A stretch of 64,000 bases of DNA from Macrostomum lignano (Eukaryota), in assembly GCA_002269645.1 (NCBI GenBank), contig NIVC01000140.1, positions 496,001-560,000 of the forward strand, written 5' to 3'. Shown here one piece after another: positions 6,928-31,144 of this stretch. A program made the translations under genes and the position numbers. A model generated the notes under the pieces. It was not told the origin of the DNA. It was given only the letters and a program-made list of their open reading frames with translations, and did no database searches. Positions within the stretch are counted from its first letter, which is position 1, and every line of letters starts with the position of its first letter.

Positions 6928-6982
6928 CTTTGAGACTATACACTATAGCAATCCGGTCCGCTGAAGGTTTGTGCCTTCTCAG

Positions 6983-10566: not shown

Positions 10567-10608
10567 CTGTAGCTTTCATCTTTCCCTCGCTACTTCTCAG
10601 TTGCAGAG

Positions 10609-11735
10609 ATGGTGGCCACCAGGACCTACATGATAAGAAGCATGTTTTGGTACGGGCAGCAGTTTATCGTGGCTTGGGTCCTGTTCGCCGCGTGCATCTG
10701 GGGCGCGACTGACGGCTCTGGCGTTCCGGCCGTCTACTGGAGCAGCCCCGTCATCGCGGTGACTTCGGCCTTGGGCATCGCGGCTGCGTGGCGAGTTTTG
10801 AAGCAGCGCAGCTCCATCCCGGCTTACTGGGTCTGCAGCCTGCTGCTCAACCTGCCGGCTATCGGAGTCTGCCTACCTGGCGTTGTCGGCGGGGGAGACT
10901 TAAGCAAGGTCCCTGCTGCGCTCTCCTTCGGATGCGGCCTGTTTCTGCTGCTTTCTGCTTTTGTGATGGTAATTTGCCTTGATGTTGCCGCCGCCCCAGC
11001 AGCTCAGACAGCATAAGTAGATTGAATAGGGCAGAGCAGTAGTTAATGCGTCTGAATCTGGAGTACCCAGGTTCGATTCGACCCTGGGATTTTTGGGATC
11101 CTCGCACATCAGGGCCACCTGTGCACTATCTGCAAACTATCTTACTACAAGTAACCAACAGGCTTGTTATCCCAGCAATTCGGGCAGACTAAATATGGAA
11201 GCAGTATTAATTATATCTATTAATAATTGATTACACCTGCCCTAATAGGCAGATGAGCAACCGACAGCTCAGCCGCAGCCATTGCACGGCACATCTGAAG
11301 GCTGCGTGCGGCTGTTCAGTCCAAGGACTGGGGGGGGGGGGGGTCGCCACACACCCTCAATTACCCCAGCTAATGCTGGCACCCATTTTACAGCTGGATG
11401 AACTGAAGCAATGCAGAGTTAAACGTCTTGCTCATGGACACACACTGGTTCCAGTGGGATCGGGAATCGAACCCCCCACCTTCAAGTCGGGAGTCCGACA
11501 CTGTAACCACTAGGCTGGCATGGAGGCAGGGTTCACTTGAGGTCACTGGCCAGAGCTAAATTGTGAATCGAGTTCTATCCGCACCCCCCTGCAGAGCCTC
11601 ATATTTGCCATTTTCCTCTTGCTGCACTTCGCCTGCGGCTCCGAGTTTCTGCGGCTCTTCAGCGGCCAGCCGGCTGGCGAGGCCGAGGAGCGCCGGGGGC
11701 TGCTGGCCGGAGATGACGGCAAGCCGCTGACCTGA
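10609..11735 (+). CDS. Divergent MS4A-like four-TM protein, duplicate copy join(10609..10968,11595..11735)
   Basis: Exon 1 ORF translation identical to the 3017 gene; same donor (10969) and acceptor (11594). Confidence 0.72.
11212..11524 (-). mobile_element. tRNA/CORE-like SINE, duplicate copy
   Basis: B box at 11462-11473; same sequence as 3620-3930 apart from polyG length. Confidence 0.7.
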
Positions 11736-12074
11736 GCCGGGCTGCTGTGCAGTGATGAAGCTTTACACTGAATCCAGTATTGTCAAATTCATAGCTTCAA
11801 TACTCTTTGTATTTTCAATAATTTTCATATATTCATTCAATGCAATACCGGTCTTTGTACTTTTTCTCGCAACCAAAACCCCAAGAGTTTTTTAGAATAT
11901 TTGATTATGCTGGTTTAGTTTTATTCTGAACATTTTTAGCAGTGCGAAATGAGACACGACTGTGGCGATTCCAGCTCTGGTATATTTCTCTTCACTTAAA
12001 ATATAGTAGCTGTGGGCATGCAGTGTCTGCATCTTCAAGCCAGCTTTGGTGCTCATTTGGTGCTCAGTTCCATA

Positions 12075-12354
12075 ATAGATCCCCAAGTTCCATAATTGAT
12101 CCCCAAGTTCCATAATTGATCCCCAAGTTCCATAATTGATCCCCAAGTTCCATAATTGATCCCCAAGTTCCATAATTGATCCCCAAGTTCCATAATTGAT
12201 CCCCAAGTTCCATAATTGATCCCTAAGTTCCATTATAAATCCCCAAGTTCCATTATAGATCCCCAAGTTCCATTATAGATCCCCAAGTTCCATTATAGAT
12301 CCCCAAGTTCCATTATAGATCCCTAAGTTCCATTATAGATCCCCAAGTTCCATG
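12075..12354. repeat. 20-bp minisatellite, duplicate copy, 14 units
   Basis: Counterpart of 4481-4760. Confidence 0.95.
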
Positions 12355-12930
12355 ACAGATCCCGAAGTTCAGGATCCCGAGTATCTACATGCTAAGATCG
12401 TGAAGCCCTGTTTACAGATTCTAAATTCCCTCATGGAGCCTGAAGTATTTCAATAGACTCTGAAGATTTTAATAGCTCTCACCCCCCCCGGCAGACTCTG
12501 TGGGCCGGCTGCAGCCGATGTGACGCTTTTTCCGATTTTACCGTTTAGCGGCTTTTTTGTTTTTATATGATTTAAATATAAAATAAAAGTTTCAACATTT
12601 TCGAATGGCTAAAGTTGAGTTTGGTATTAATGTGGTAATATATTATAACCTTCTAGGCTTCTACCCGACACTCTAGCAGTGCCACGCGATGCTGCTTCAG
12701 CAATTTTACCTGTCCGTCAGAATCGTCAGTGCTAGGTACGAGTAGTCAGAATGGTAGATAGACGACCCGGTAGAGAGCTAGATAGAGGGTAAAATAGAGG
12801 GGTAGATAGAAGGCTAGATAAGGAGCTAGATAGAGGGTGGATAAAGGGCTAGATAGGGGTAGATTGAGGGGTAGATAGAAGGGTGGATAGTGCTAGGCAG
12901 AGGGCAAGATAAGGGGGCCTACAAGACAGA

Positions 12931-13266
12931 GTGCTAGACAGAGTGCCAGGCAGTGTGCTAGACAGAGTGCCAGGTAGTGTGTTAGGCAGTGTGCTAGACA
13001 GAGTGCCAGGCTGTGTGCTAGACAGAGTGCCAGGCTGTGTGCTAGACAGAGTGCCAGGCTGTGTGCTAGACAGAGTGCCAGGCTGTGTGCTAGACAGAGT
13101 TCCAGGCTGTGTGCTAGACAGAGTGCCAGGCTGTGTGCTAGACAGAGTGCCAGGTAGTGTTAGACAGTGTGCTAGACAGAGTGCCAGGTAGTGTTAGACA
13201 GTGTGCTAGACAGAGTGTCAGGCGGTGTGCTAGACGGAGTGCCAGGCAGAGTGCTAGGCAGAGTGC
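12931..13266. repeat. 24-bp minisatellite, duplicate copy
   Basis: Counterpart of 5337-5672. Confidence 0.9.
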
Positions 13267-13754
13267 TATCAAACATTATCCAATCATTCCAGCCCCGTCC
13301 AGAATGGCTGAGGCCGGCTCCTCTATCGCGGAGATGCCGGAGAGGCCGACGGGCTCCCAAACTGCATTTTTTGAAATTTGAATCTCCTTTGGCAGCTGAA
13401 CCAAGAAAATTGGACCGTATTCCGAGGTTTCTTCAACCTCTTATCACCAGCAATAATCTTTTAAAAGCAATCGGTTGTGTTGCTGAACTAAGTTTATTTA
13501 GTTCAGGTAACTGGCTAAAGCCATGGCAAGTTCAGGTTAAAGTCATATTCAAGTTCTGCGCAATACTCTCGCATTCATAGTAATTGCTAGCTGACGAAAA
13601 GCTGCCTAATAAATACAATTGCAAAGCATGTAAGCCTTACAGTGCTGCAGGATGTGGTAGAGTTGCTCGCTTAATTTTCCGTTTTCAACTTGACACTTGA
13701 GATAGTACAATCGTTTGCTTATTTATATTGAGTGTTTCGTTCAATGATAAAATA

Positions 13755-13794
13755 TACCCTGACGACGGCCCTAGTGGGTTAAAACGCGTTGGTT
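13755..13794 (+). ncRNA. Degenerate minimal hammerhead motif, duplicate copy
   Basis: Identical to 6161-6200; CTGACGA at 13759-13765. Confidence 0.6.
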
Positions 13795-14061
13795 TTCGCC
13801 ATAAATGTTGATCTTAAGCTTTATTTATTAGCTGCAGGATGTTGCAGTGCGCATCGTTTATGATTATTCCTTTAACTTTTCTGCTTATTTGCTGTCACTC
13901 CATGACGGCCCAGATTAATCTGCTTGCCTTTGCCAGCGTATGATGCGGCGCAATGCTTTGCCTTTCAGCTGCTGGAATATTTGCCATTTTATGCAGTAAA
14001 TACTCCAGCAGATGCTATTGCCGTACACGCGTCTAGCTCACATATCGCTGTTGGAAGCTGA

Positions 14062-14521
14062 GAGAATTGGCGATTGCAGTTTTGTGATGGCAGAGCCGGG
14101 CTTTGAGAATTGGCGATTGCAGTTTTGTGATGGCAGAGCCGGGCTTTGAGAATTGACGATTGCAGTTTTGTGATGGCAGAGCCGGGCTTTGAGAATTGGC
14201 GATTGCAGTTTTGTGATGGCAGAGCCGGGCTTTGAGAATTGACGATTGCAGTTTTGTGATGGCAGAGCCGGGCTTTGAGAATTGGCGATTGCAGTTTTGT
14301 GATGGCAGAGCCGGGCTTTGAGAATTGGCGATTGCAGTTTTGTGATGGCAGAGCCGGGCTTTGAGAATTGGCGATTGCAGTTTTGTGATGGCAGAGCCGG
14401 GCTTTGAGAATTGGCGATTGCAGTTTTGTGATGGCAGAGCCGGGCTTTGAGAATTGGCGATTGCAGTTTTGTGATGGCAGAGCCGGGCTTTGAGAATTGG
14501 CGATTGCAGTTTTGTGATGGC
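14062..14521. repeat. 43-bp minisatellite, duplicate copy
   Basis: Counterpart of 6468-6927. Confidence 0.95.
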
Positions 14522-14576
14522 CTTTGAGACTATACACTATAGCAATCCGGTCCGCTGAAGGTTTGTGCCTTCTCAG

Positions 14577-15085
14577 CTCTCCTCTCCCCTCTCTTCTCTT
14601 CTCTCGTCTCCCCTCCTCTCCTCTCTTCTCTTCTCCTCTCCTCTCCTCTCCTTTCCTCTCATCTCCTCTCCTCTCCTCTCCTCTCCTCTCCTCTCCTCTC
14701 CTCTCCTCTCCTCTCCTCTCCTCTTCTCTCCTCTCATCTCCTCTCCTCTCCTCTCCTCTCTTCTCCTCTCCTCTCCTCTCCTCTCCTTTCCTCTCATCTC
14801 CTCTCCTCTCCTCTCCTCTCCTCTCCTCTCCTCTTCTCTCCTCTCCTCTCCTCTCCTCACCTCTCCTCTCCTCTTCTCTCCTCTCCTCTTCTCTCCTCTC
14901 ATCTCCTCTCCTCTCCTCTCCTCTCCTCTCCTCTTCTCTCCTCTCATCTCCTCTCCTCTCCTCTCCTCTCCTCTCCTCTCCTCTCATCTCCTCTCTTCTC
15001 TTCTCCTCTTCTCTCCTCTCCTTTCCTCTCATCTCCTCTTCTGTCCTCTCTTCTCTTCTATTTTATTCTCGTCTCTTCTCTTCTC
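14577..15085. repeat. (CCTCT)n microsatellite, duplicate copy
   Basis: Counterpart of 6983-7500, 10 bp shorter. Confidence 0.95.
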
Positions 15086-15196
15086 CTATTTCGTCTCTCT
15101 TCTTTCGCCTCTTTTTTCTCCTCTCTGCCCTCCTCTGGCCCGCAGTCATGCGTTAGGTTACTTATCTGGCCCTTTAGGTAAAATGTTTGCCGACCC

Positions 15197-15914
15197 CTAG
15201 CCTAAGCCTATCCATAGGTAGCATATCCGGTCTCTGGTAAATGAAAGGTAAAAGAAAGAGCAGTGGCAGACAATGTTGCTGCGCATCTTCGTTGCCGTAA
15301 TTGAAAAAGGGCAAAGTTTACTATCGAGGTCGCCTCGGAGGAAGCAGTAACTGTCGAGGTAGCAATTATGGCCCGTAAAAGTCATAACAATGGTGCGAAT
15401 CCTTCCGCTTTGGTTTGGAAGGACTGAACCGCTGTGTGTGATTGCTGACGATCTGACGATTGATGACCGTAGAAGGGATATGGGCCATGGGCTCAGGGCC
15501 AAGGAAAGAGCCAAAAGCCGAACTTTTTGGCGAGGGTGTCTGCCAGCTCGTTCCCCGGAAACCCTGCATGCGTGCTATGGGATCCACTTCGGATGACAGT
15601 ATTATTGCTACTGGCCATATAGGTTGAGCTGCCCGAGCGCAGCGACTTTCCAGGAGTTCTTAGTGGTGTGGCAAAGGCCGCCTAAGGCCGCTTGGCTGTC
15701 AGAATGGATGACGATAGTCTCTCTCCTCTCATACCCTTGGCATTCAGCTCTGCGGCGCAGGAGCTGATATAACAAGGACTTCTTTCTAGAAGACGGTGGA
15801 GAGTCCGCCAGTGTGCTGGGCATTAGACTCTGAAAGCTGGCGGTAATTGTAGCTGTCTTTGATGGATCCGTCCGTGTAACAATTTGAACCTCACAGCATC
15901 CCATAATGGGATAT
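15197..15914 (-). mobile_element. Decayed LINE RNase H/3' end, duplicate copy
   Basis: YTDGS at 15864-15878; same lesions as copy 1. Confidence 0.85.
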
Positions 15915-18534
15915 GGAGACCCCTGTAAGCACTGAAAGAGGTTGAGAGTGCGGGCTTCAAATATTGATAAGATCATAACATCAAAAAACAAGAAGGTACT
16001 GCTCCCGCCGGCCACGCAGTAGCCAGAAAAGGGGGAGCAATCAGAAAAGTCAGTCAGCAAAGCAATGTTTAGTGTCGAATATCTCTGTATCAGAGCCGTC
16101 TTTTGCGGTGGCTGAGGTGTCATTTTAAAGCTGAGACATGCGTAGAAAGCAAATCGAGGCATTTTTTAATCCAGCATATGCTTTTAGGCTGCTGCTACGG
16201 TTGAAAAAACTTCAGTCAACGGTAAAGCGATGTCTAATCAGTGTTGCTAAGCAATTTTTGAATCAATGTATCTCCAAAAGATTTTTACATCATTACATGA
16301 ATTAAAGCTCATTCGATGCAAAATTGCGTAAATATATGCTAAAAGATGGTTGAAGCAGGTCAATTTTGTTAAAGTTACAGACGATCGTTTTGAATGTAGT
16401 CTCACTGTCTGAATAAATATAAATATATATATTGGCCAAACAGGCTTCTTGCCTGAGCCAAACTTACTACTACTTCTTCATTCTTACGTCTAAAGTTTTT
16501 ATTTTAATGGACCTCCGACTCCGACCTATGCTGAACTCTTTGTGCTGAGGTCATGCTAGAAATTATTTAATCTAATGTCAATGAATAGGCCTAGATTGTA
16601 TTGTATGTGCTGTTCTGTCTCAGACTGTCTGGTGTATAGGGTAGGTCGTAGGTCACTAGGCCTAGTGTAGGTAGGCTTTGTAGCCTTTGGTAGAATAGCT
16701 ACCTGTCCTTGGCCTATAATAGGGCCTATGTCATGGCGATAGAACTATTTCTATAAGTGATAGCTGTTATATCTATCATTTTACATAAGTCATAAGTTCA
16801 TAGTTGTTAGGGACTCAAGTAGGATTTTGCAAATTGTTTTTGGTAGGCCTAAGGCTTAGGCCTAGCCTATGCTAGGGCCTAGCTTGTTTTTAAGGCAATG
16901 CTTATTTAGCCAGCATTACTATTTGTCAAACAAGCTTGCTATTATTTAGCTAGGGCCTAGTAGTCTAACCCTATATTGTTGGTCAAACATTTTTGGACTA
17001 AAATGTTTTTACTAGGGGCCTATGTTATCCTATAGTCTGGATCATGCTAAGTGCATGCCCAAACAAAAATTGAATAATTTCAAATGCATACAAAAAAATT
17101 GAGTGCACATCTACACTTTCAAATCTAGGCCAATATATATAGTATTGTGACAATAAATACCTTTTTTATGTGCAATAATTAATGACCTTTTTGTGTTGCA
17201 TAAAGCACCTTTTTGTCTCATAACTTCATTGATTTTTTTCATTTATGCTTATACTAGGGCCTAATTGCAATATAAAATGCTTTAGTTTGAATGCTTTAAA
17301 ACTAAAAAGCTTAAAATGTATATTTAAAAATGAATTTTTTATTGTTCTTTTAATTTAACACTAACTCCTACATGTGATTTTAGAAAGTGCATACCAGGTA
17401 TGCATGCATACTACTTTCTTAAGAGTAATGTATGCCAATTGTATATATCTAACTTTTGGTATGCAAGGCCAATTTTTGGGTATATACTATATAATCCAGA
17501 GAGTGGGGCCTATGTACCCAAAGTTAAATGCTTTTTTATATTTGCAAAATATATTTTAAGGCATATCATATAACTTATACATATGTATCATCTATCATGT
17601 ATGACATATATCCCAGGACATACATTGATGTATACTAAAAAATAATAAGTATCTTTATTATATACCAGGAAATCTTAGCATATGTCACTTTCTAAACTAT
17701 GGCATGCTACAAGTGTAGATATCAATATAACATAAGTCATTATTATTTTAATAAATATAAAATATAGCAAAAATATTCATTATTCTACTTAAATCATAAA
17801 AATTAATTAAGTAAAAAGTAAACAAAGAATTAAGAATGGATATGAATAAAAGTCATCTTAATATTAGGGGATATCAAGTAAAAGCTAGGGGTTGCATAAA
17901 ATTCAATGGGCCTTTTGCAAATAACCTACATTGGCATATATATAGGTGGCAACAATTGTATATGCATTTTTAGCCTAGATAGCTATCCTAATTTACTAGT
18001 AGAAAGTGCCTTTGTGACTTCTGCTTGCTAGAATAGGCCTAGATTCAAGCCATAAGAGCAATAATAAGCTCTAGGGCATGGGACCAAAGGTACCTAGAGT
18101 CTATACTGACCAGTTGGGAGCTGTGGTAGTTGCCTAGGTTAGTAATCAGTATACTTGGCTGATTTGTAAGCCTTGGCTAAGATAGCAGCTACATGGGAGG
18201 TGACAGCAGGGATATGCAGATGACTTGAGGTGCAGATATGCATGATTGTTGCATCCCAAGCTAATAGCAGCTTGTGTTCTAAACTTAGGATCATGTCATT
18301 TATGCTAGAAATTTCTGGTAAACACTTGTAACAGCTGGTATACATTTGGTACACTTATGGCGCATACTTGAATTTTGTTAGATTTAATTATAAAGTAACA
18401 ATACATGCTATTCACCTATTCACTGCTTATATTGTCTGATGTTTCCTTTGCTTAGAGTCAATTTTTAGTGCCATCATTTCATTTAAGTTACACTATCTTA
18501 CTAACAGGCTCTCATTTCCTATAAATCTCTGCTA

Positions 18535-19249
18535 CCCAGTAGTCTCAGTGCTGTCCTGTGAGCCCCAGTAGTCTCAGTGCTGTCCTGTGAGCCCCAGTAG
18601 TCTCAGTGCTGTCCTGTGAGCCCCAGTAGTCTCAGTGCTGTCCTGTGAGCCCCAGTAGTCTCAATGCTGTCCTGTGAGCCCCAGTAGTCTCAGTGCTGTC
18701 CTGTGAGCCCCAGTAGTCTCAGTGCTGTCCTGTGAGCCCCAGTAGTCTCAGTGCTGTCCTGTGAGCCCCAGTAGTCTCAGTGCTGTCCTGTGAGCCCCAG
18801 TAGTCTCAATGCTGTCCTGTGAGCCCCAGTAGTCTCAGTGCTGTCCTGTGAGCCCCAGTAGTCTCAGTGCTGTCCTGTGAGCCCCAGTAGTCTCAGTGCT
18901 GTCCTGTGAGCCCCAGTAGTCTCAGTGCTGTCCTGTGAGCCCCAGTAGTCTCAGTGCTGTCCTGTGAGCCCCAGTAGTCTCAGTGCTGTCCTGTGAGCCC
19001 CAGTAGTCTCAGTGCTGTCCTGTGAGCCCCAGTAGTCTCAGTGCTGTCCTGTGAGCCCCAGTAGTCTCAGTGCTGTCCTGTGAGCCCCAGTAGTCTCAGT
19101 GCTGTCCTGTGAGCCCCAGTAGTCTCAGTGCTGTCCTGTGAGCCCTAGTAGTCTCAGTGCTGTCCTGTGAGCCCCAGTAGTCTCAGTGCTGTCCTGTGAG
19201 CCCTAGTAGTCTCAGTGCTGTCCTGTGAGCCCCAGTAGTCTCAGTGCTG
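18535..19249. repeat. 29-bp minisatellite (CCCAGTAGTCTCAGTGCTGTCCTGTGAGC), about 24 copies
   Basis: Exact periodicity; each unit contains GTGAGC. Confidence 0.95.
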
Positions 19250-19394
19250 CACAAGTCCCACCCAAAGTCCTCAGATGCGCCATGCACTTCTGGCGGCCGT
19301 CTTGCTGACTGGGGATGGACGCATTCCCTATTCCACTTCAGTTTTAGGGTTAGAAAAGATTGAAATAGAAATGTGAATCTTGCTTTTGCTGCAG

Positions 19395-20444
19395 CAGCCA
19401 CAGCAACAGCCTGGCCCCGTGGTGTCGCCAGTGCCGCAGGTGGTGACGCCACCCTCTGCCGCGGCCCCCGGCAGCTACGCGAGCCGCGTGCCGCCTTCGG
19501 TACTGCGGGCCCACCGCATCATGGGCTTCCTGCAGCTGCTGACTGGCGCTCTCGTCATCATCATCAACATTGCGGGCCTGGCCGTCGGATCTGGCAAGAA
19601 AATCAACACTCGGTACGGCCTGTCGACCCAGTTCAGCCTGGTCGGCGGCGGAGTCTGGTCCGGCCCGTTCTTCATCGCTGCCGGCATCTCTGGGCTCTCG
19701 GCAGGTCGTCCCGGTGGCGGCTGCACCCTGGGCTGCGTGGTCACCTGCCTGGTGTTCTCCATCATCGCCTCGATCTTGGCCTTCTCCGCCATGGTCACCG
19801 AGGCCATTGTGGCTGCTGAGAACCGCAGAATGTACGAGTACTCCAAGTCGTACTCAAGTAGCAGCTCTGAAGACGTCTTTCGGGCCGTGTACGGCACCGG
19901 CATCGCCTGTGTGCTGCTGTGCGCCTTCGAGTTCGTGCTGGCCATCGTGCACTCCGCTTTCGCCTGCCGCGCCTCCTGCTGCTGCGTGCCATCAGCTGTG
20001 AGCAACCAGCAGCAGCCGCACCAGCAGGTGTTCATGACCGGCCAGCGCGCCTACGTCACGGGGCATGAGGGGCCCTACCCTGGCCATGTCGTAGTCTACC
20101 CTGGTCAGCAGGTCGTCTTTGCTCCTCAGTCAGGCCACCCACCGCCACCCGGGTATCCTGTCCAGCAGACCGGGTATCCGGGTCAGCAGGCTGGGTATCC
20201 GGGTCAGCAGGCCGGGTATCCGGGTCAGCAGGCCGGGTATCCGGGTCCGCAGGCCGGGTATCCGGGTCCGCAGGCCGGGTATCCGGGTCCGCAGGCCGGG
20301 TATCCGGATCAGCAGGCTGGGTATCCAGGTCCGCAGGCCGGGTATCCGGGTCCGCAGGCTGGATATCCGGGTCCGCAGGCCGGCAGCAGCACAGCTCCGC
20401 CGCCCTATGGATCCAGCATTGAAGGTCACGCGGTGAAATTTTGA
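19395..20444 (+). CDS. MS4A/CD20-like four-TM protein with 11 GYPG(Q/P)QA heptads and a PPPY motif; start codon unresolved
   Basis: TM1 [22 protein letters not shown]2 [17 protein letters not shown] (CD20-family-like), TM3 [21 protein letters not shown]4 then CRASCCC. The frame opens after acceptor TTTTGCTGCAG at 19394; first in-frame ATG is 19521. Confidence 0.85.
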
Positions 20445-21039
20445 AACTGCTATCAAGGCGCGTACATTGGATGTTTAATTGGATTGGTTGTTTAAAAGAC
20501 ACCTACCTCCCACTTGAAAGCTGATCCGAATTCTAAGCCGTCAGCAAGATTCAGTGGGTCCAGACGCACTCTGATTGCCGAATATGGCGCGAACTTCTTG
20601 TTGCAATATTTTTCATTCTGTTTATTTCTGTAAGTTCTCTTTCTGCAGACGCTGTGTACGACCTCCTATTGACAGCTGAAATCATGCTTTTCGTGTTGAA
20701 CTAAATCAAGCGTGTCATCTCATGCGACTTCGGTCCTCATTCACTTTAGCTGCGGAGATTGTACTTTAATGGACTTTTATGACCGGCCTCAGCTGAAGTT
20801 GACCGGCATGATGCGGGCTGCATGAATGCGTGATATTTTATAGCGTGCGCTGCATCTTTCATACTACTATTAAAAAACTATTTTTTAAATAAAAAATGAA
20901 AATTCGAAACTTCTACTTACTCTCAAAGCATCCTGTAAAACTTTGTCGTCATGACCTTATTTGACTGGTTACCTTATTTAAATCTTCGTTTTAAATATTT
21001 AACCTGAGTTTGTAGCCCCCAGATCTATGAAACAGCATC

Positions 21040-21470
21040 CTCAGTCCCATCACGCCAGCACCCTCTCAGCCCCATCACGCCAGCACCCTCTCAGTCCCAT
21101 CACGCCAGCACCCTCTCAGTCCCATCACGCCAGCACCCTCTCAGCCCCATCACACCAGCACCCTCTCAGTCCCATCACGCCAGCACCCTCTCAGCCCCAT
21201 CACGCCAGCACCCTCTCAGTCCCATCACGCCAGCACCCTCTCAGCCCCATCACACCAGCACCCTCTCAGTCCCATCACACCAGCACCCTCTCAGCCCCAT
21301 CACACCAGCACCCTCTCAGCCCCATCACACCAGCACCCTCTCAGCCCCATCACGCCAGCACCCTCTCAGCCCCATCACGCCAGCACCCTCTCAGCCCCAT
21401 CACGCAAGCACCCTCTCAGCCCCATCACACCAGCACCCTCTCAGCCCCATCACGCAAGCACCCTCTCAGT
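21040..21470. repeat. 25-bp minisatellite (CAGCACCCTCTCAGCCCCATCACGC), about 17 copies
   Basis: Tandem periodicity ending about 45 bp before the next gene. Confidence 0.95.
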
Positions 21471-21514
21471 CCGCGAGATCAGGGAATGCTAGTATTTAAC
21501 CAATTCTTCGCTTC

Positions 21515-22600
21515 ATGCAGCAGTCACATCAGCTTCAACAGCCGGGCACGCGGGTGGCGACCCCCGGCAACTACCTGGACCGCGTGTCGGCTCGGGTGCT
21601 GCGCGGCCTCCGCATCATGGGCATCATTCAGGTGCTGGTCGGTATCTTCGCCATGAGCGTCAGCATCGCCGGTCTGGTCATCGGCACCGACAAGAAGATG
21701 GTGGACAAAGACAGCGGCGCCGAGAGCGAGCTGAGCCAGCTTGGCAGCGGCGTCAGGGCCGGCCCGTTCTTCATAGCCGCCGGCATCTCCGGCATCATCG
21801 CCTCCCGCCCAGGCTGCTGCTGCCCCCTGGGCTGCGTGGTCACCTGCCTCGTGCTGTCCATCCTCGCCGCCGTCTCCGCCTTCTCTGCCATCATCACGGA
21901 GGCGTTTGCGGTCGCGCAGAACCGCACCCTGTATGAGAATGCTGGCAGCGGCAGCGACTTCACCGCCTACCACGTCGTCTACAGCACCGGCATCGTGTGC
22001 GCGCTGCTCTGCGGCATCGAGCTGGCGGTGGCCAGCGTGCACTCCGCCTTCGCCTGCTGTGCCTCCTGCTGCTGTGTGCCATCGGCTGTGAGCAGCGAGA
22101 CACAGCAGCGGCAGCATCAGCAGCATGTGGTCACCAACCAGCCTGGAAGTTCCTCTGGCCCGCAGGCCGGGTATTCAGGTCCACAGGCCGGGTATCCGGG
22201 TCAACAGGCTGGATATCCGGGTCCTCAGACTGGGTATCCGGGTCCGCAGGCCGGGTATCCGGGTCCTCAGACTGGGTATCCGGGTCCTCAGGCTGGATAT
22301 TCGGGTCCTCAAGGCGGATATCCGGGTCCTCGGGCTGGATATCCGGGTCCTCAGGCTGGATATCCGGGTCCTCGGGCTGGATATCCGGGTCCTCAGGCTG
22401 GATATCCGGGTCCTCAGGCTGGATATCCGGGGCCTCAGGCTGGATATTCAGGTCCTCAGGGCGGATTTCCGGGTCCTCAGGCTGGATATCCGGGTCCTCA
22501 GGGCGGATATCCGGGTCCGCAGGGCAGCTCCACGGGCGGCCGGATCCCGGATGCGCCGCCATCGTACGAGGCCAGCATGGCAGAAGCTGTTCGGAAGTGA
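21515..22600 (+). CDS. MS4A/CD20-like four-TM protein with 17 GY(P/S)GPQA-type heptads and PPSY, 361 aa
   Basis: Clear paralog of 19395 ([44 protein letters not shown]); intronless ORF. Confidence 0.88.
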
Positions 22601-23192
22601 AGCTCTGAAGCGCCATCCTGTTTTGGACTTGCAGCTGTGATGTGAAACTTTTTCTACACGTTGTTTTACCTATCGCCAGTTTTTCTGCTGCAGGTCGGGC
22701 ATGCATCTTGTGGCCTTAGTGGCAGCATTTTTGCCCAACTTGCACACAAAGAAGTTTTATGTTCCGGCTTTAGTCCATGAACAAATTTGCCACCAAATTT
22801 TTACATATTTTTTCTGCTCCTTCGATCCGATATGCCCGGAAACTGCGGAAATTTTTATTGCAAAAATTTATTAAATAATTATTGAATCCCGACTTTACAT
22901 TCGCTCTGCCCATGAACTTTTATTCCACATGCCTTTGGCAAGCCTATAATTAAGCTGTATATCTATCAGACACTGTTTCAGCAAAACTTTTCAGTCTTTT
23001 TTAGCTTTGATTAGCAAACTATAACATTCGTCTGGCCTCGCAACTGAATGTGTAACCGCAAAATTGAAAATCTCAGGCTCTCTTAACTGTTTGTGATGAC
23101 TCGCCAGCTTAAAAGTTCAATAACTCAGAAATATAGATTTTTCTATGGAAGATTCCATACAGTTTGGTTCAGAGGACTTTTTTATTCTGAAC

Positions 23193-23790
23193 CTGCAATA
23201 GCCTACTATCAGTAGCCCAATAGCTAGCACAGCTGAAATAGCCTACTATCAGTAGCCCCATAGCTAGCACAGCTGCAATAGCCTACTATCAGTAGCCCCA
23301 TAGCTAGCACAGCTGCAATAGCCTACTATCAGTAGCCCCATAGCTAGCACAGCTGCAATAGCCTACTATCAGTAGCCCAATAGTTAGCACAGCTGCAATA
23401 GCCTACTATCAGTAGCCCAATAGCTAGCACAGCTGCAATAGCCTACTATCAGTAGCCCCATAGTTAGCACAGCTGCAATAGCCTACTATCAGTAGCCCCA
23501 TAGCTAGCACAGCTGCAATAGCCTACTATCAGTAGCCCAATAGCTAGCACAGCTGAAATAGCCTACTATCAGTAGCCCAATAGCTAGCACAGCTGCAATA
23601 GCCTACTATCAGTAGCCCCATAGCTAGCACAGCTGCAATAGCCTACTATCAGTAGCCCCATAGCTAGCACAGCTGCAATAGCCTACTATCAGTAGCCCAA
23701 TAGCTAGCACAGCTGCAATAGCTTACTATCAGTAGCCCCATAGCTAGCACAGCTGCAATAGCCTACTATCAGTAGCCCCATAGCTAGCAC
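23193..23790. repeat. 40-bp minisatellite (AATAGCCTACTATCAGTAGCCCCATAGCTAGCACAGCTGC), about 15 copies
   Basis: Units at 23221, 23261 and onward. Confidence 0.95.
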
Positions 23791-23867
23791 GCATCCATAT
23801 TTCATTCCACCTCGGTGAGCACCATTATCCATCTGTCAGCAATGTTCCGTCCGTCTGTCTTCTTCAG

Positions 23868-24232
23868 GAGCAGCCTGCGCCGCGGGTTGTGATGGTGGCG
23901 CCCTCAGACACGGAGGCGTCCGGCAACAATAGGAGCATCATCACATGGGCATCATCCAGTTGGTGACCGGCGCCCTCACCATCATCTTCAGCGAGGTGGG
24001 CCTGAGCATCGACACCGTCAAGAAGATGAAGCTCAAATACGCTGGAGGCGAGTTCAGCCTGTTCGGCAGCGGAATCTGGGCCTGTCCGTTCTTCATCGGC
24101 GCCAGCATCTCCTGATTCATGGCTTCAAGGCAGGCCTGCCGCTGCACCCTGGGCTGCGTGGTCACCTGCCTGGGGCTGTCCATCGTTGCTACCTGTCTGA
24201 CCGCCTTCTCCGCCATGGCTTCTGAGGGGTGA
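23868..24232 (+). pseudogene. MS4A-like pseudogene
   Basis: From ATG 23945: MGIIQLVTGALTIIFS...[54 protein letters not shown]. In-frame TGA at 24113 (Gly in paralogs), truncation at 24230 before TM4, and a frameshift between the acceptor (23867) and the ATG. Confidence 0.85.
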
Positions 24233-24625
24233 CCGCCGCAACACTTGAATGCACATTCGTGAGCAAAATGAGGGAACAAAAAGCAGTGAAGCTGAAGCCC
24301 AGTGGAAACTATTTTGGTTTTATGTTTCTTCAAGTTTTTAAATAGATATCGCTTTGTCACAGCAGCCGAACCAGTCTAAGTGCATTCAATCAAAAGTACT
24401 TTTGCTACTGTAAATCATTTTCTGCTACATTTTTGTTCATAACTTTTCTTTCAATTGTCTGAATTTTAAAACATGTTAAGATTTTATATAGAGAAGAGTT
24501 AAAGCTATAAAATTGTGCGAAATGATGTCACTTCGATCATCAAAACGAGTTATTTTGAAAAGTAATACTACTTTTGAGACAGCCCTCGTATTATAGAAGG
24601 GGCAAAGCTACGAGATACGCAGTTT

Positions 24626-24780
24626 TGTTTTATTGCATAATTGGATGCTGCTGTTCGCATCAGCTGATGTTTTATTGCATAATTGGGTGCTGCTGTTGAC
24701 ATCAGCTGATGTTTTATTGCATAATTGGATGCTGCTGTTCGCATCAGCTGATGTTTTATTGCATAATTGGGTGCTGCTTT
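24626..24780. repeat. 42-bp tandem repeat, about 3.7 copies
   Basis: GTTTTATTGCATAATTGGATGCTGCTGTTCGCATCAGCTGAT units. Confidence 0.85.
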
Positions 24781-25066
24781 GGGGGCAGTCCAGCAGGTTA
24801 TTTATGTCTTACCGTATTACATTGCATTCAAAATTTCGCCCACTCTTCCGAGAAGCCCTGTTCTCGCATTATTTATTCGCATTCATTTTGCTCAGCTGCT
24901 TTTAAGCTGCGCCCAATTTTAACTCAATTTGCTTTGCTTTCTGTTTATCAATTAATGTATCCTATTTTCAGCTGTTACTTCGCTGTTCTCAAGCATCATG
25001 TTCTATTAGACTCATATGACTCATGTATTATGCGGTTGAGATTGAGATCAAGTGCAACAATGAGAT

Positions 25067-26179
25067 ATGAGGTTTGAGATAGTGAGAGTGGGCGAGGTTA
25101 TTTGGGATTTTTACTTTAGGCAGTCACTGAGTCCAGAGGGCGGGAGGCGGCAGTGCAGATTCACTCAGCAGGTCAGCACCGCCAGTAGCGAGCCAACCCA
25201 GTCTATCCATGCTCCGCCCCATCTCCCGCAGCAGCAGCCACAGAGTCAGGCGGTGCCTCTCGTGACGCCGCAGGTTGTGACTGGGGCACCGGTTGCCCCG
25301 AGCGGCCCCACAAACTATGCCAGCCGACTGCCGCCCTGGGTGCTGCGGGGCCACCGCATCATGGGCTTACTGCAGCTGCTGACAGGCGGTCTGCTCTTAG
25401 TCATCGGCATTTTTGGCCTGGCCGACGGCTTCAGCATCGTGATGAAGAGGCGCGGGTATTACTACTTTCGGGTTTCCTCCGCCGGCCTCTGGACCGGCCC
25501 GTTTGTCATGGCCGCTGGCATCTCCGGAATGTCGGCTGCCCGCAATGGCTGCGGCTGCGCCCTGGGCTGCGTGATCACCTGCCTGGTGCTCTCCATCATC
25601 GCCTCTGTTGCGGCTTTCTTCGCCATGGTCTCTAGCTCTGTCACTTCGGTCTTCAATCAGCACCTGATGGATCAGTACACCGCGACCAGCGGCTCCCGCG
25701 ATGACGTCGATGTCGCCTTCCGCAAGGCCTACGCCATCAGCGTCGTTTGCGCGCTGCTGTGCGCCTTGAACTTTGTGCTGGCCATCGTGCACTCCGCCTT
25801 CGCCTGCCGCGCTTCCTGCTGCTGCGTGCCGCCTGTTGCAAGCTCCCAGCAGCCGCAGCAGGTCATCTATTTGGCTCAGCCCGGATATCCGGGTCAGCAG
25901 GCTGGGTATCCGGGTCAGCAGGCCGGGTATCCGGGTCAGCAGGCTGGGTATCCGGGTCAGCAGGCCGGGTATCCGGGTCAGCAGGCCGGGTATCCGGGTC
26001 AGCAGGCCGGGTATCCGGGACAGCAGGCCGGGTATCCGGGTCAGCAGGCTGGGTATCCGGGTCAGCAGGCCGGGTATCCGGGTCAGCAGGCCGGCTCAAG
26101 CGCCTATCAATTCGCGGATTGTCCTCCACGGTACGTACAGAGCGCTGGTGAGGCTGAAAAGGTCCGGCCGACTCCATAA
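25067..26179 (+). CDS. MS4A/CD20-like four-TM protein with 10 GYPGQQA heptads and PPRY; paralog homology starts at about 25232
   Basis: [66 protein letters not shown]. The residues from ATG 25067 to 25231 have no counterpart in the paralogs and may be UTR or intron. Confidence 0.85.
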
Positions 26180-27078
26180 TGCTTTGCCGGTGTGGCGTCC
26201 TCGGGTTGACCGCAGACCTCACTTAATCGTCTGCATGCCAAGAAATTTATTATTTTTTTAACTTCTGAATAATTTTATGCGAGCTTGGCAACTGCTCCCT
26301 GTGTTGCCTCTGCTTCAGCCTTGATATTGGCGCCATGCTTCTTCAAGGATGCACTTTTTAAACGGAATCTCTGGCAGTTCTGCCTTGTCTACATCGAATC
26401 TTTTCCCACAATATTTTTGTTTGTCTTTAGCTGTCATTTCAAGTCGCCGCTTCCAATGTTCCCTGTTATTCCGCTTGTCAATAGTTGCATTGTTTTGCTA
26501 TTCATATTTACTGGCTCTGCATGCCGAACTCAAATTAAGCTGATTTTTATTCAAGATATGCTGATCTGTTTTGCCGTCACCGAAAAAGCCGTCCAACAGT
26601 CGTTTTGTTATTACTAAACTGTCTACTGACCTTAGTAGACTGAATAGAGTTGTTAAAAATGTTCATAAAGTGACGCACCCGCGCAACACGGGCCAAGAGT
26701 GATTATAGAAGCACCGCAGAGTCACTTGCGTAACCCCAGAGTCGCAGGCACTAAAAAAGCTTCAAATTGACTCTTAGGCGACTCCAGGCGCAAGCTGGAA
26801 TGAGTTTGAAACGAGTCTTGGGCGCTTCTTGGCCTTGGCACCGTTTTTATCGGGACTTGCTTCTGCCCAGCTGCTTACCCGCTTTAATTAAGCATTACTT
26901 TTGCTAAATAAACAGTTTGCCAATGCGCACTGCCGTATGGTTGTTGATTTTGACCTGTCGTGCGGTTTCAAGCCTCCGATCCGAGTTCATCGGCTCTTGT
27001 TTATCATTTATGAATTTCCACAGGCAGAAATATTCAGCTGCTTTCTCTTCTTTGCAGCCACCGCAGGGAGGCTCCGTC

Positions 27079-28302
27079 ATGCTTGAGGAGCCGCAGTTCC
27101 CCGTCAGGCAGCGCAGCGCGCACAAGAATTTCGGCACCCTGGCGGTGCTCTGCGGCTGCTCGCTGGCCCTGCTGGAGGTCCTCGCCATCGTCATGCGCTC
27201 CGACTACGCCATCCGCGGCACCGGACTTTGGTGCGGCGCCGTCCTGCTGCTGTCTGGCGGCCTCGCCGTCTCCGCCGCCACCGCCCGCCACCGGCTGCGC
27301 CGGCGCTGCCTGGCGGCCGGACTGGTCGCCGCTGCGGCCCTCCTGGTGACGGCGGCTGCGGCCACCGCTGAGGCGGCCACTCTGGCCGAAAATCGGCGCC
27401 TTTACGAGCGAACTCGCATGCGGATGCGGGAGCAGGTACGAGTACGACTCGTTTTGTGCCTGTGATCTGCTTGAGCAGGTGTGATCTGCTTGAACAGGTG
27501 TGATCTGCTTGAGCAGGTGTGATCTGCTTGAGCAGGTGTGATATGCTTGAGCAGGTGTGATCTGCTTGAGCAGGTGTGATCTGCTTGAGCAGGTGTGATC
27601 TGCTTGAGCAGGTGTGATATGCTTGAGCAGGTATGATCTGTTTGAGCAGGTGTGATCTGCTTGAGCAGGTGTGATATGCTTGAGCAGGTGTGATATGCTT
27701 GAGCAGGTGTGATATGCTTGAGCAGGTGTGATCTGCTTGAGCAGGTGTGATATGCTTGAGCAGGTGTGATATGCTTGAGCAGGTGTGATCTGCTTGAGCA
27801 GGTGTGATATGCTTGAGCAGGTGTGATATGCTTGAGCAGGTGTGATATGCTTGAGCAGGTGTGATATGCTTGAGCAGGTGTGATCTGCTTGAGCAGGTGT
27901 GATATGCTTGAGCAGGTGTGATATGCTTGATCTGCTTGGTTTTGGCTGTTTGGGTCAAATGTGATCTGCAGCTTGAAACAAATGTGACCTACCAATCTGG
28001 CATGTTTGCAGGCCTATCTGGCGGTGTTCTACCTGGGCGTGGCCAAGACGGTCGTGGAGTGCCTGGCGCTGCTGCTGTCCACTGCGCAGCTTGTCTGCCT
28101 GCTCGGCTTCTACCGGCGGCTCCTCTCTGAACGGCGGGCTGGCGGCCTCAGCCTGGCGGCCGTCACGGAGGCGTCGGCCGAGCCGCTGTCGCTGCGGATG
28201 CCGCAGCCCCGGCCGCTGGAGCCGCCGCCGTACTCGCCTGTTGCCGACCCGCTGGAGCCGCCGCCGCCGCCGCCCTACTCCGAAGTGGCTGATGAAAAAT
28301 GA
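27079..28302 (+). CDS. Divergent MS4A-like four-TM protein, join(27079..27435,28012..28302), 215 aa, two PPPY motifs
   Basis: GTGLWCGAVLLLSGGLAVSAA (MS4A TM2-like) and AENRRLYE (compare AENRRMYE in the paralog). Phase-0 donor CAG|GTACGA at 27436 and acceptor TTTGCAG|GCC at 28011. Confidence 0.8.
27461..27930. repeat. 19-bp intronic minisatellite (GTGAT[C/A]TGCTTGAGCAGGT), about 24 copies
   Basis: Fills most of the intron; each unit contains GAGCAG|GT. Confidence 0.95.
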
Positions 28303-28900
28303 GAAGCTGCCAGCAAACTGAGCTGTGTGCATTCGGGCTGCCATTCGGGCTGCCTCAGTGATATAAGATAGGCCTACTGTATGATATGTCGCCTACTTAT
28401 GAGTAGCAAGTCAATAATATGAAGCAAATTTCTTTGTGTGTGCAAAAATTTTGCGAGCGTGTGTCCGCGGATTCCAATGGCATTCCAGCTATAATTAATA
28501 ATTTTGTGTCCAGCTGTACAAATATCGCCTTGCTCGCCTTTTTTGTAACTTCACTTCATTTTTTATCATTCGCTTCACGCGTCAGTTTTAATACCTTTGT
28601 TGTTTGTGATTTTCTATGCCAACCGCTTTTTATCAGGTAAGAGCGAATACCACTACTTTGGCTGTGATTTTTTAATTATGACTGTTGCTGTAGGCATTGT
28701 AATTAAACCTGGTCTTCCACGACCTCACTGGTTGCTAACCGGATGTCTGCTCAGCGCTCAGCGAATCAGTTATAACAAATTTTGAAACTGACAGTAAATT
28801 GAAATATATATATATTTACAGGCTGTTGCCATTGTGCCCAATAAGACCGCCTTCTCCGCCTCTTTGCTTCAAAACTCGCACCTGATATAGCGTAATTGCC

Positions 28901-29315
28901 TCAGCCTACCCCTGACCAACTCAGCCACTCCCTGACCAACTCAGCCACCCCCTGACCAACTCAGCCACCCCCTGACCAACTCAGCCATCCCTTGACAAAT
29001 TCAAGCCATTCCTTGGTCAACTCAGCCACCCCCTGACCAACTCAGCCATCCCTGACCAACTCAGCCACCCCCTGACAAACTCAGCCATCCCTGACCAACT
29101 CAGCCACCCCCTGACAAACTCAGCCTACCCCTGACCAACTCAGCCTACCCCTGACCAACTCAGCCACCCCCTGACCAACTCAGCCATCCCTGACCAACTC
29201 AGCCATCCCTGACCAGCTCAGCCATCCCTGACCAGCTCAGCCATCCCTGACCAACTCAGCCACCCCTGACCAACTCAGCCACCACCTGACCAACTCAACC
29301 ATCCCCTGACCAACT
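28901..29315. repeat. About 20-bp minisatellite (CCCTGACCAACTCAGCCAYC), about 20 copies, directly upstream of GRWD1
   Basis: Imperfect tandem array ending about 25 bp before the ATG. Confidence 0.9.
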
Positions 29316-29342
29316 TATCTACCTCCTGACCATTGCAGCCAG

Positions 29343-31144
29343 ATGACAACTGAAGGAGACGCGGAGCAGCAGCAGGACGCAGAGGGCAGTGATGACGAGG
29401 AGATGCTGGACGAGGAGGCAGAAGGGGAGGAGCCGCAGGAGCCGGCGCGGCCCTACCTGCCGAACAGCGGCGACCCGCAGCCCGGACCGGACGAGGAGCT
29501 GGTGATGGACCGCACGGCCTACAAGCTGTACTACCAGATGAGCGTGGAGTGGCCCTGCCTGAGCATCGATGTGCTGCCCGACCCGGAGAACGCAGCCAGT
29601 GGCGCCGCCTTCGACTTTGACGACGCCGAGCGGTCGCTGAGCTGCTTCCTGGTGTGCGGCACGCAGGCCCCCGAGGCCGGCCGCAACGCCGTCTGTGTGA
29701 TGCGCGCCGCCGGCCTGTTCCCCATGCGGCGCCGGCGCGCCGGCGAGGACGGCGAGGACTCCGACGACGACTCGGAAGAGGACTCGGACGACGAGGAGGC
29801 GGACCGACGCGGCGACGTATCCGTGGCACAGCTCCGCCACAACCGGACGGTCAACCGGATTCGAGCCTCGGACGTCACGGGCCGGCCGCTAGCGGCCACC
29901 TGGTCTGAGGCGGGCGCTGTGTACATCTTCGACCTGACCGAGGCCCTGACCGCCGTGGCCGACCACCACCTGCTGACCGAGTTCACCCGCCGGCCAGAGT
30001 CGCCCGCGCCGCTGTTCGCCTTCCGCGGCCACTCGGCCGAGGGCTTCGGGCTGGACTGGAGCCGTCTGGTGCCCGGCCGCCTGGCCAGCGGCGACTGCGC
30101 CGGCGCCATCCACGTCTGGCAGCCGGCCGAGGGCGGCGCCGGCTGGCGGGTGGACCCGCGGCCGCTGGCCGGCCACAGCGGCTCGGTGGAGGACCTGCAG
30201 TGGTCGCCCACCGAGGCCAGCGTGCTCGCCGGCTGCTCCGTCGACCGCAGCCTCCGCGTGTTCGACGTGCGCGCCAAGCCCGACAAGGCCTGCATGCTGA
30301 CCCGGCCGGACTGCCACGGCAGTGACGTGAACGTCATCGCCTGGAACCGGCTGGAGTCCCAGTACATCGTCAGCGGCGGTGACGACTGCGCTCTGCGCGT
30401 CTGGGACCTGCGCCGCTTCGCCAGCGGGGCGCCGCCTGCCTGCGAACTCAGGTGAGTGCAGCTTGGCTGCTGGGGTGCCCGAATCAGGCAGTGCCTCCCC
30501 AATATCAGGCAGTGCCTCCCCAATATCAGGCAGTGCCTCCCCAATATCAGGCAGTGCCTCCCTAACATCAGGTTGTGCCTCCCCAATATCAGGTAGTGCC
30601 TCCCCAATATCAGGCAGTGCCTCCCCAATATCAGGCAGTGCCTCCCCAACATCAGGTATTGCCTCCCCAATATCAGGCAGTGCCTCCCCAATATCAGGCA
30701 GTGCCTCCCCAATATCAGGTATTGCCTCCCCAATATCAGGCAGTGCCTCCCCAATATCAGGCAGTGCCTCCCCAACATCAGGTAGTGCCTCCCCAACATC
30801 AGGTATTGCCTCCCCAATATCAGGCAGTGCTGCTTATCCCTGTCTACCGGCATGTACCGCAACACCCCCGCCCCGCCCGCAGCTACCACAAGGGCCCGAT
30901 CACCTCAGTGCAGTGGCACCCCACGGACAGCTCGGTGTTCCTGGCCACCTCAGAGGACAACCAGCTGACGCTGTGGGACCTCGCCTGCGAAGGCGTCTCG
31001 ACAGCCGGCCTGCCGCCGCAGCTGCTGTTCATCCATATGGGCCAGCAGGAGATGAAGGAGGGCCACTGGCATCCGCAGCTTCCCGGCTTGGTGCTCAGCA
31101 CCGCGCTGGACGGCCTCAACATCTTCAAGACCATCAGCATTTAA
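29343..31144 (+). CDS. GRWD1: Glutamate-rich WD repeat protein 1 (Rrb1 ortholog), join(29343..30451,30883..31144), 456 aa
   Basis: Acidic N-terminus, [14 protein letters not shown]...EWPCLSIDV (CAF1C/H4-binding-type domain), WD40 repeats ([37 protein letters not shown]), and C-terminal [12 protein letters not shown]...[14 protein letters not shown]. Phase-2 donor (30452) and acceptor (30882) are compatible. Confidence 0.95.
30483..30830. repeat. 21-bp intronic minisatellite (CCCCAATATCAGGCAGTGCCT), about 16 copies
   Basis: Lies inside the GRWD1 intron. Confidence 0.95.

Follow-up and report, generated by a model that had tools for sequence, protein, structure and literature searches.

A spliced leader as the probable source of the first methionine in two genes of a tandem MS4A/CD20-like array of the flatworm Macrostomum lignano

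All flatworm spliced leaders (SLs) end in AUG, and this AUG can serve as an initiator (PMC9851317 and PMC12582326, both citing Cheng et al. 2006); in S. mansoni the leader AUG lies in frame in 28% of the trans-spliced mRNAs, with more than 40 cDNAs that need it (PMC9851317, summarising Cheng et al. 2006). In Macrostomum lignano about 30% of the genes are trans-spliced to one single leader of 35 nt, CGGTCTCTTACTGCGAAGACTCAATTTATTGCATG, and the SL RNA gene consists of this leader ending in ATG followed by the donor GTAAG (PMC8629364); the genome paper on M. cliftonense and M. hystrix terms the final ATG of the SL a 'translation start codon'. Here we describe a tandem array of five genes (genes 1 to 5) in a 64,000-nt stretch of the M. 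lignano genome, called the window below (assembly GCA_002269645.1, Mlig_3_7; NIVC01000140.1:496001-560000; the coordinate in our locus L002 plus 11,517 gives the window coordinate). For genes 1 and 4 of this array, the sequence is best explained by an SL-donated first methionine (Met1), a reading that includes SL joining at the AGs described below and to which we assign a probability of about 0.7. For the other genes an SL-donated Met1 is redundant or unproven.

The closest described case is that of Cheng et al. (2006). As far as that work is relayed in later papers, the two have in common an SL that ends in AUG, an in-frame acceptor and the lack of a genomic AUG upstream of conserved residues; they differ in that S. 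mansoni cDNAs were studied there, with translation tests, whereas here the subject is an MS4A-like tandem family of a free-living macrostomid, known from sequence alone. The open reading frames (ORFs) called slORFs by slORFfinder (PMC9851317) also have a leader-donated start that becomes visible only after in silico SL joining; they were called from SL-read junctions and ribosome footprints, whereas the M. lignano array was read from the genome sequence. Published accounts of trans-splicing and repeat-padded operons in M. lignano (PMC5730564, PMC8629364) concern the same genome and the same SL, and the array resembles what they describe in its acceptor motif (three of five sites), its minisatellite spacers and its spacing below 1 kb, but they hold no analysis of SL-AUG use or of an MS4A-like family. 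The mechanism of an SL-donated Met1 is already documented in flatworms, and the array is an example of it, not a new mechanism. The relevance of SL starts to Macrostomum is likewise in print, and the Met-less models of the genome annotation already imply it. The mildly novel part is an apparent interchange of genomic and SL-borne ATGs among very young duplicates, to which a sixth family member in the window (g6) is related.

The organism is an SL-using flatworm with a leader ending in AUG, as an earlier note on this DNA had presumed; besides the published description, the SL exon with GTAAG behind it and mRNAs capped with the SL were observed directly. The species was recognised by exact and 96% protein matches to GCA_002269645.1, and the public protein P0006 is identical to the gene 1 ORF of the window. 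In a metagenome scan for the SL tail, the leader followed by GTAAG was also present in an independent genomic contig, and the SL was found at the 5' end of five mRNAs in the metatranscriptome of a Macrostomum-like organism (JGI contigs with the prefix Ga0316592_ and contig Ga0302322_100095745; our loci L007-L012). These environmental mRNAs are VDAC-, GAPDH-, IDH- and CNBP-like, and each of their ORFs has its own ATG; one SL RNA gene in the environmental dataset has the SL followed by GTAAGACACC. No contig of the array family was among the results of the SL-tail scan, and no SL RNA gene was found in the 64-kb window when up to three mismatches were allowed.

The AGs that the earlier note had proposed as acceptors end at 19394, 21520, 23867, 25231 and 27057; all five positions proved exact, and each AG is in phase 0 with the ORF downstream of it (Table 1). 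At every site the AG is accompanied by a pyrimidine tract in the 81st-99th percentile of all + strand AGs (gene 1, 81st; gene 2, 91st; gene 3, 99th; gene 4, 98th; gene 5, 98th), with a presumed outron upstream. The published trans-acceptor motif of M. lignano is [T/C]TNCAG (PMC8629364; PMC5730564). Since the paralogs derive from tandem duplication, the five sites are to be counted as one inherited feature and not as independent coincidences. In addition, the N-terminus is rich in Gln, so that CAG codons automatically become 'phase-0 AGs', and the CAG runs step by three bases, so that any choice of AG keeps phase 0. An SL AUG joined at these sites would be in frame with the ORFs, with no stop between, and this holds for all tandem AGs of the CAG runs.

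Genes 1 and 4 are those for which this matters most. In gene 1 of the window, as the earlier note had observed, ATG 19371 is followed directly by an in-frame TGA (19374-19376), and the next in-frame ATG, 19521, is downstream of the conserved YASRVP..VLRAH motif; the frame opens at 19377 and reads ILLLLQ/Q (here and below a slash marks a possible splice junction), with no in-frame genomic ATG. In gene 4 the junction is CCGCAG/CAG/CAG/ in all three copies of the array known in the genome (the two others are introduced below). The frame of the window copy is open for 58 codons upstream, to ATG 25067, but a 2-nt insertion in copy L003 shifts this far-upstream ATG, and gene 4, intact there, is therefore left with no in-frame upstream genomic ATG at all. 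The statement that no genomic AUG can open the conserved N-terminus thus holds for gene 1 in the window and for gene 4 in L003. The earlier note had extended the lack of a good ATG to the paralogs at large. This was borne out for window gene 1 and for gene 4, where no ATG is conserved across copies, and it was wrong for gene 2, which has an in-frame ATG at 21515, two codons before the acceptor (PILRFMQ/Q), and for gene 5, which has one at 27079, 7 codons after it. An out-of-frame ATG also lies upstream of gene 2 at about 21479. Gene 3 is a pseudogene: it has a premature TGA after the second transmembrane helix (TM2), lacks TM4 and the tail, and has its N-terminal motif deleted or frameshifted, all in the same way in the three copies. 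In the other genome copies it is annotated only as a 56-amino-acid (aa) ORF.

In the mechanism that we propose, a minisatellite and a pyrimidine tract with a (C)AG acceptor lie shortly upstream of each gene, and the array would probably be transcribed as one or a few long precursors. Trans-splicing would join the 35-nt SL (...TTGCATG) to the acceptor and discard the outron, along with its minisatellite and upstream ATGs. With the usable AGs all in phase 0, the SL-terminal AUG would become codon 1 (Met-Gln-Pro-Gln... in gene 1), provided that ribosomes use it. In gene 1 of the window and gene 4 of L003 it would be the sole AUG able to open the conserved N-terminus; in gene 2 it would replace the genomic ATG that lies in the outron two codons upstream; and in gene 5 it would be one of two or three possible starts. 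With U at -3 and C at +4 the SL AUG has a weak context, whereas that of a conserved internal Met of the proteins (in the sequence RIMG) is strong, with A at -3 and G at +4, and a shorter isoform made by some leaky scanning is therefore plausible.

The five-gene array occurs twice more in the assembly, on NIVC01002325.1 (loci L001 and L003), and these copies are about 97-98% identical to the window, non-coding DNA included. At the gene 1 junction both read gATGCAG/CAG where the window reads gCTGCAG/CAG, while gene 2 has ATGCAG/CAG in three of three copies. At the gene 5 junction the window has TTCTCTTCTTTGCAG/CCA, L001 has GTGCATG/CCA and L003 has GTTCATG/CCA, which puts a genomic ATG of L001 and L003 exactly at the position of the SL ATG; the same Met-Pro-Pro-Gln-Gly-Gly N-terminus is possible either way. 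The junctions differ at 5-6 positions within 16 nt (window 27040-27060 against L001 18030-18047 and L003 18250-18268). The CAG version of gene 5 is not an assembly error, because the UniProt model P0015, from the older ML2 assembly, is of the window type (SSLQ/PPQGG, with the window-specific residue D in MRSDYAIRG). Gene 1 of the window differs from its ATG-bearing copies by 7 synonymous and 5 nonsynonymous changes, a nonsynonymous-to-synonymous ratio (pN/pS) of 0.26, which disfavours simple pseudogenisation. On these grounds we suggest, tentatively and as the less likely case, that a genomic ATG and an SL-donated start have been interchanged among very young duplicates a few percent apart (genes 1, 5 and g6).

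A different origin of the genomic ATGs before the CAG runs, as relics of retroposed SL-mRNAs, was rejected: when the 45 nt ahead of nine junctions were aligned locally with the SL, they matched it no more closely than shuffled sequences did (p 0.2-0.97). The copies also differ at the other end of the genes. The 21-nt arrays that encode the C-terminal PGQQAGY heptads (20149-20383, 22163-22523 and 25877-26094) have different repeat numbers from one genome copy to another; gene 1 encodes 350 aa in the window and 329 and 322 aa in the other copies. PPxY motifs follow the heptad arrays (PPPY, PPSY), with PPRY in gene 4 of the window and PPPY in that gene elsewhere.

Of the five genes, three are intact close paralogs, gene 3 is the pseudogene and gene 5 a divergent paralog, and the proteins are MS4A/CD20-like four-pass membrane proteins. 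Scores against the Pfam family CD20 (PF04103) were 26.7, 17.5 and 21.2 bits, below the cut-off of 27.9, and gene 1 gave no match. An AlphaFold model (pLDDT, the predicted local distance difference test, 78; pTM, the predicted template modelling score, 0.70) predicts a four-helix transmembrane fold like that of CD20 and Fc-epsilon-RI beta. The top Foldseek matches of the model were 8k7t_B and 8y81_B (MS4A2, that is, Fc-epsilon-RI beta; TM-score 0.71-0.77, with 0.77 on the target; probability 1.00) and 6y90_A (CD20), and UniProt names one gene 5 model TMEM176A. The M. lignano proteins have four predicted transmembrane helices in common with the MS4A, CD20 and TMEM176 proteins; they differ from them in the added PGQQAGY heptads and PPxY tail and in Pfam scores below the gathering threshold. 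In single-sequence and profile searches, the family was matched in M. lignano alone. The earlier note had suggested that trans-splicing may supply Met1 for a whole receptor family. A receptor role does not follow from an MS4A-like four-pass structure, and the extension to a whole family is too wide, given the ATG of gene 2, the genomic ATG at or beside the junction in other copies of genes 1 and 5, the own Met of the paralog P0004 and the decay of gene 3; what stands of the suggestion are genes 1 and 4.

Across the three copies, all nine GenBank models of genes 1, 2, 4 and 5 are 'partial' and lack an initiator Met. The first residues are QQPQQQ in P0001, P0005 and P0006, QQPHQ in P0003, QQSHQ in P0009, SHQ in P0008, QPQSQ in P0002, PQSQ in P0007, PPQGG in P0011 and EPQF in P0012. 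With the exception of two gene 5 models, the models start 0-3 nt from the AGs of the array, and all start within CAG runs or beside an AG; the models of the gene 4 paralogs (P0002 and P0007) are 5'-partial and begin in the CAG run. The coding sequence of P0006, which represents gene 1 of the window, starts at 19392, and from this position together with the in-frame stop at 19374 it follows that the transcript model starts at 19390-19392. The gene 2 model must start at 21516-21518, because ATG 21515 would otherwise have been called as the start. Both are precise cuts, of the kind that the annotation pipeline, TBONE, places where trimmed SL-containing reads peak (PMC5730564). The names Mlig001419 g1, g2, g4 and g5 imply that the array in L003 formed a single transcriptional-unit cluster on assembly and was divided into genes afterwards.

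The exact distance between annotated starts and AGs varies. Nine of the 13 models of the array and of a nearby WD40 gene have NAG as their first codon, and three others directly follow an AG; a single fixed offset between annotated start and AG was considered and rejected, as no rule fits all models. In most models the NAG is thus part of the coding sequence, which places the start 3 nt ahead of the junction. Such an offset would arise if the leader ATG stayed on the reads, and in the M. cliftonense/M. hystrix paper the leader ATG was left on them. Some models lie next to an ATG, namely those of gene 1 in L001 and L003, of gene 2 in the window and L003, and of gene 5 in L003. Their starts can be explained either by the ATGCAG/CAG architecture in combination with the 3-nt pipeline offset or by the trimming of reads that merely started with ATG. 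As a whole the annotation backs SL joining, as indirect support but not as proof, and it is silent on which AG of a CAG run is used. The gene IDs of the array were not found in the literature or supplements searched.

Several observations weigh against an SL-donated start. The published acceptor motif fits genes 1, 3 and 5 only, not genes 2 and 4. A genomic AUG is available for gene 2 (21515), for gene 1 in L001 and L003, and for gene 5 (27079, with the junctional genomic ATG in L001 and L003); in gene 2 and in these two copies of gene 1, the ATG two codons upstream gives a near-identical protein without any splicing. Five models begin directly after a genomic ATG and not after an AG, two unrelated genes have three models between them whose starts are not at an AG, and genes 4 and 5 have no annotation in the scaffold of the window. 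Between the paralogs of this fast-evolving family, the ratio of nonsynonymous to synonymous substitution rates (Ka/Ks) of the low-complexity N-terminal segment is 0.5-1.5, which is not decisively below 1; the remainder of the gene has 0.5-0.9. Lastly, the SL AUG runs into a stop after 2-41 codons in five of the five SL-capped environmental mRNAs, and SL-AUG starts must for this reason be a minority case.

Some of these points lead to other explanations. In one of them the mRNAs would not be trans-spliced at these AGs and ribosomes would use a start codon encoded in the genome, with the Met-less models being annotation artefacts; the codons would be ATG 21515 in gene 2, the homologous ATG of gene 1 in the other copies and the near-cognate CTG 19389 in gene 1 of the window. 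We consider this unlikely for the array as a whole. It draws on the in-frame ATG that precedes the CAG run by two codons in gene 2 (three of three copies) and gene 1 (L001 and L003), on the ATG directly before CCA in gene 5 (L001 and L003), on the five models that begin right after such an ATG, where reads starting with ATG may have been trimmed as partial SL, and on g6, where a CTG in a good Kozak context likewise takes the place of the ancestral ATG. However, T at -3 and C at +4 make a poor context for the CTG of window gene 1 (19389-19391), gene 4 lacks a nearby ATG in all copies and in L003 lacks one altogether, and unspliced leaders would carry upstream ATGs (the ATG-TGA at 19371 and the out-of-frame ATG at about 21479). 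An artefact also fails to account for the models that start with CAG and have no preceding ATG (the WD40 gene, P0002, P0007 and P0008). A genomic ATG or CTG start on unspliced mRNA is therefore plausible for gene 2 and a poor explanation for gene 4. The earlier note had itself raised a second possibility, a short conserved 5' intron that shares the acceptor and whose upstream exon, capped or SL-spliced, supplies the ATG. The donor-like strings are located as it claimed, at 23815 (GTGAGCACC) and 25172 (GTCAGCACC), so that GTGAGC and GTCAGC lie 53 and 60 nt upstream of the acceptors of genes 3 and 4; gene 4 stays in frame with ATG 25067 once the 60 nt are removed, and flatworm acceptors are often common to cis- and trans-splicing (PMC12582326). 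Against this, GTCAGC is off the species donor consensus GT[G/A]AG, the candidate donor of gene 3 is GTTAGC in L001, and only 24 nt, free of ATG, lie between the minisatellite and that donor. ATG 25067 is out of frame in L003 through the 2-nt insertion, although gene 4 is intact there, and the substitutions in the segment upstream (4 nonsynonymous to 2 synonymous) look neutral. No comparable donor exists at genes 1, 2 and 5, and the upstream exon appears in no public model, nor is any ATG-bearing exon conserved. What the earlier note took as counter-evidence is weak on this account, and we regard a shared cis intron as very improbable.

The third explanation takes the conserved internal Met (RIMG; 19521, 21617 and 25361) as the true start and everything upstream as 5' untranslated region, alike among the paralogs only because they are young. 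In its favour, the Kozak context of this Met is strong in genes 1, 2 and 4, residues 1-25 are predicted to be disordered, and the Ka/Ks of the N-terminal segment is 0.5-1.5. On an SL-spliced mRNA, however, ribosomes would meet the in-frame SL AUG first, with no stop behind it, and at least some of them would translate the extension. The motif (T/S/N)YASR(V/L)P..VL(R/T)(A/G)H is kept in P0004 and g6, paralogs of about 50% identity that have no internal Met (VILG and VVLG in its place), and in P0004 it follows the protein's own Met (MENPTYASRVP). Insertions and deletions between paralogs in the N-terminal segment are all multiples of three, and the AlphaFold model predicts, at a pLDDT of about 85, a YASR helix or turn and a TM1 helix that begins nine residues ahead of the internal Met. 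Several lines thus say that the sequence ahead of the internal Met is translated, and a start at that Met as the sole one seems improbable to us. An SL-donated Met1 stays the preferred reading for genes 1 and 4.

Table 1. Features of the array and its neighbours in the window (a slash marks a possible junction; uORF, upstream open reading frame)
Feature	Position	Strand	Remarks
29-nt minisatellite	18535-19249	.	24.7 copies; presumed outron of gene 1
Minimal uORF, ATG and in-frame TGA	19371-19376	+	closes the frame 6 codons upstream of the acceptor
Gene 1 pyrimidine-rich tract and tandem acceptors CTGCAG/CAG/	19377-19397	+	AGs end at 19394 and 19397, both phase 0
Gene 1, single-exon MS4A/CD20-like ORF	19395-20444	+	C-terminal PGQQAGY heptads and PPPY; no in-frame ATG before 19521
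25-nt minisatellite	21040-21469	.	gene 1-gene 2 spacer
Gene 2 genomic ATG (21515-21517), then CAG/CAG/	21515-21523	+	AGs end at 21520 and 21523
Gene 2 ORF	21521-22600	+	model Mlig009926g1 (P0009) 5'-partial, from 21518, directly after the genomic ATG
40-nt minisatellite	23193-23790	.	upstream of gene 3
Candidate 53-nt cis intron, gene 3 (GTGAGC...CTTCAG)	23815-23867	+	no ATG between minisatellite and donor
Gene 3 pseudogene	23868-24232	+	frame from the acceptor stops after 32 codons; family frame resumes at ATG 23947
42-nt minisatellite	24626-24778		intergenic
Candidate 60-nt cis intron, gene 4	25172-25231	+	poor donor GTCAGC
Gene 4 C-rich tract and triple acceptor CAG/CAG/CAG/	25215-25237	+	AGs end at 25231, 25234 and 25237, all phase 0
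Gene 4 ORF	25232-26179	+	unannotated in this scaffold
Gene 5 strong pyrimidine tract and TTGCAG acceptor	27040-27057	+	phase 0
Gene 5 exon 1, divergent TMEM176/MS4A-like paralog	27058-27435	+	in-frame ATG 27079; GTACGA donor at 27436
20-nt minisatellite	28900-29332		intergenic
WD40 (CAF1C/RBBP-like) gene 5' end, TTGCAG/C CAG/ATG	29333-29345	+	model 5'-partial, QMTTEGD from 29340
g6, sixth family member, P0004-like	34610-35479	-	no in-frame ATG for the first 142 codons
SUPT3H candidate acceptors	59157-59177	+	in-frame AGs 59159, 59165, 59171 and 59177; AG 59157 out of frame
SUPT3H exon 1 core	59178-59536	+	donor GTGAGT at 59537; SPT3/TAF13 homology at least 8 residues upstream of ATG 59199

Each intergenic spacer of the array has a different minisatellite, and four of the five minisatellite arrays end 6-145 nt upstream of the next acceptor. 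These repeats fit the published note that repeats pad the operons of M. lignano. The raw intergenic distances and the repeat lengths to be subtracted from them are 1076-430, 1267-598 and about 999-153 nt, with 878 nt for the last spacer, which gives adjusted distances of about 650-880 nt. In M. lignano, operons are defined as same-strand trans-spliced genes with a repeat-adjusted spacing of <1 kb (PMC8629364), and the spacing of the array agrees with this definition on the condition that the genes are trans-spliced. A further minisatellite, in the intron of gene 5 (27461-27930), has the unit GTGTGATCTGCTTGAGCAG, with GT at its start and CAG at its end. Upstream of the array there is a tandem duplication (2378-9500 and 9964-17084) of at least 7.1 kb, with 99.6% identity and a period of about 7,586 nt; each 7.1-kb unit carries an identical 147-codon ORF (2981-3421 and 10573-11013).

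The sixth member of the family, g6, lies on the opposite strand and is absent from the protein database. Its core is 64% identical to P0004, and a stretch of 429 nt lacks ATG in every reading frame, for which shuffling gives a P of about 0.02. A CTG (35407-35405) occupies the position of the start ATG of P0004, in the context gccaagCTGg. The only in-frame AGs are those of an AAG (35408) and a GAG (35402), the AG with the best pyrimidine tract (35433) is out of frame, and CCAAT-like and TATA-like boxes are found upstream. Candidate explanations for g6 are CUG initiation, an SL start at a weak acceptor, or a young pseudogene.

The analysis also covered the 5' ends of two genes outside the family. 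At the WD40 gene, an SL joined at one AG would have its AUG in frame, just ahead of the genomic ATG (Met-Met-Thr-Thr), and joining at the other would open a 6-codon out-of-frame uORF. For SUPT3H the earlier note had pointed to phase-0 CAGs upstream of conserved residues that precede the first ATG. The identity of this gene rests on exon 1, which matches PF02269 (TFIID-18kDa) with 28.3 bits (cut-off 27), in an alignment whose first position is 8 residues upstream of the first Met, and residues 22-101 of human SUPT3H, and on the ORF 61001-61576, which matches residues 160-242 of the human protein (E = 4e-4); the TAF13-like N-terminal and TAF11-like C-terminal histone-fold regions are those of SPT3. 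In-frame AGs do end at 59165 and 59171, and there is no ATG before 59199 in a frame that is open from 59001 (in-frame stop at 58998-59000), but the pyrimidine tracts of these two AGs are weak (percentiles 55 and 41). The C-rich tract is followed first by AG 59157, which does not lie in frame; an SL spliced to this AG would create a uORF of 15 codons, closed by a TGA that overlaps ATGATG. No SUPT3H model was found in the protein search. Intron 1 of SUPT3H (59537-60250) is taken up by a minisatellite whose unit, like that of the gene 5 intron, resembles splice signals: it is about 24 nt long and includes GGGTGAGTA, a perfect 5' splice-site consensus; the real donor is consequently the first of about 30 tandem donor-like sites.

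Genes whose Met1 is supplied by the leader are deposited as Met-less 'partial' proteins, which the in silico addition of the SL AUG would complete. The family forms a compact natural series (ATG present, ATG lost, acceptor turned into ATG) for the study of SL-AUG use and of start-codon turnover, in an organism with working transgenesis for such tests. If the copies are functional alleles, the SL AUG, or a near-cognate CUG, relaxes selection on genomic start codons, and if the interchange is true, small sequence changes would switch a gene between SL-dependent and SL-independent initiation.

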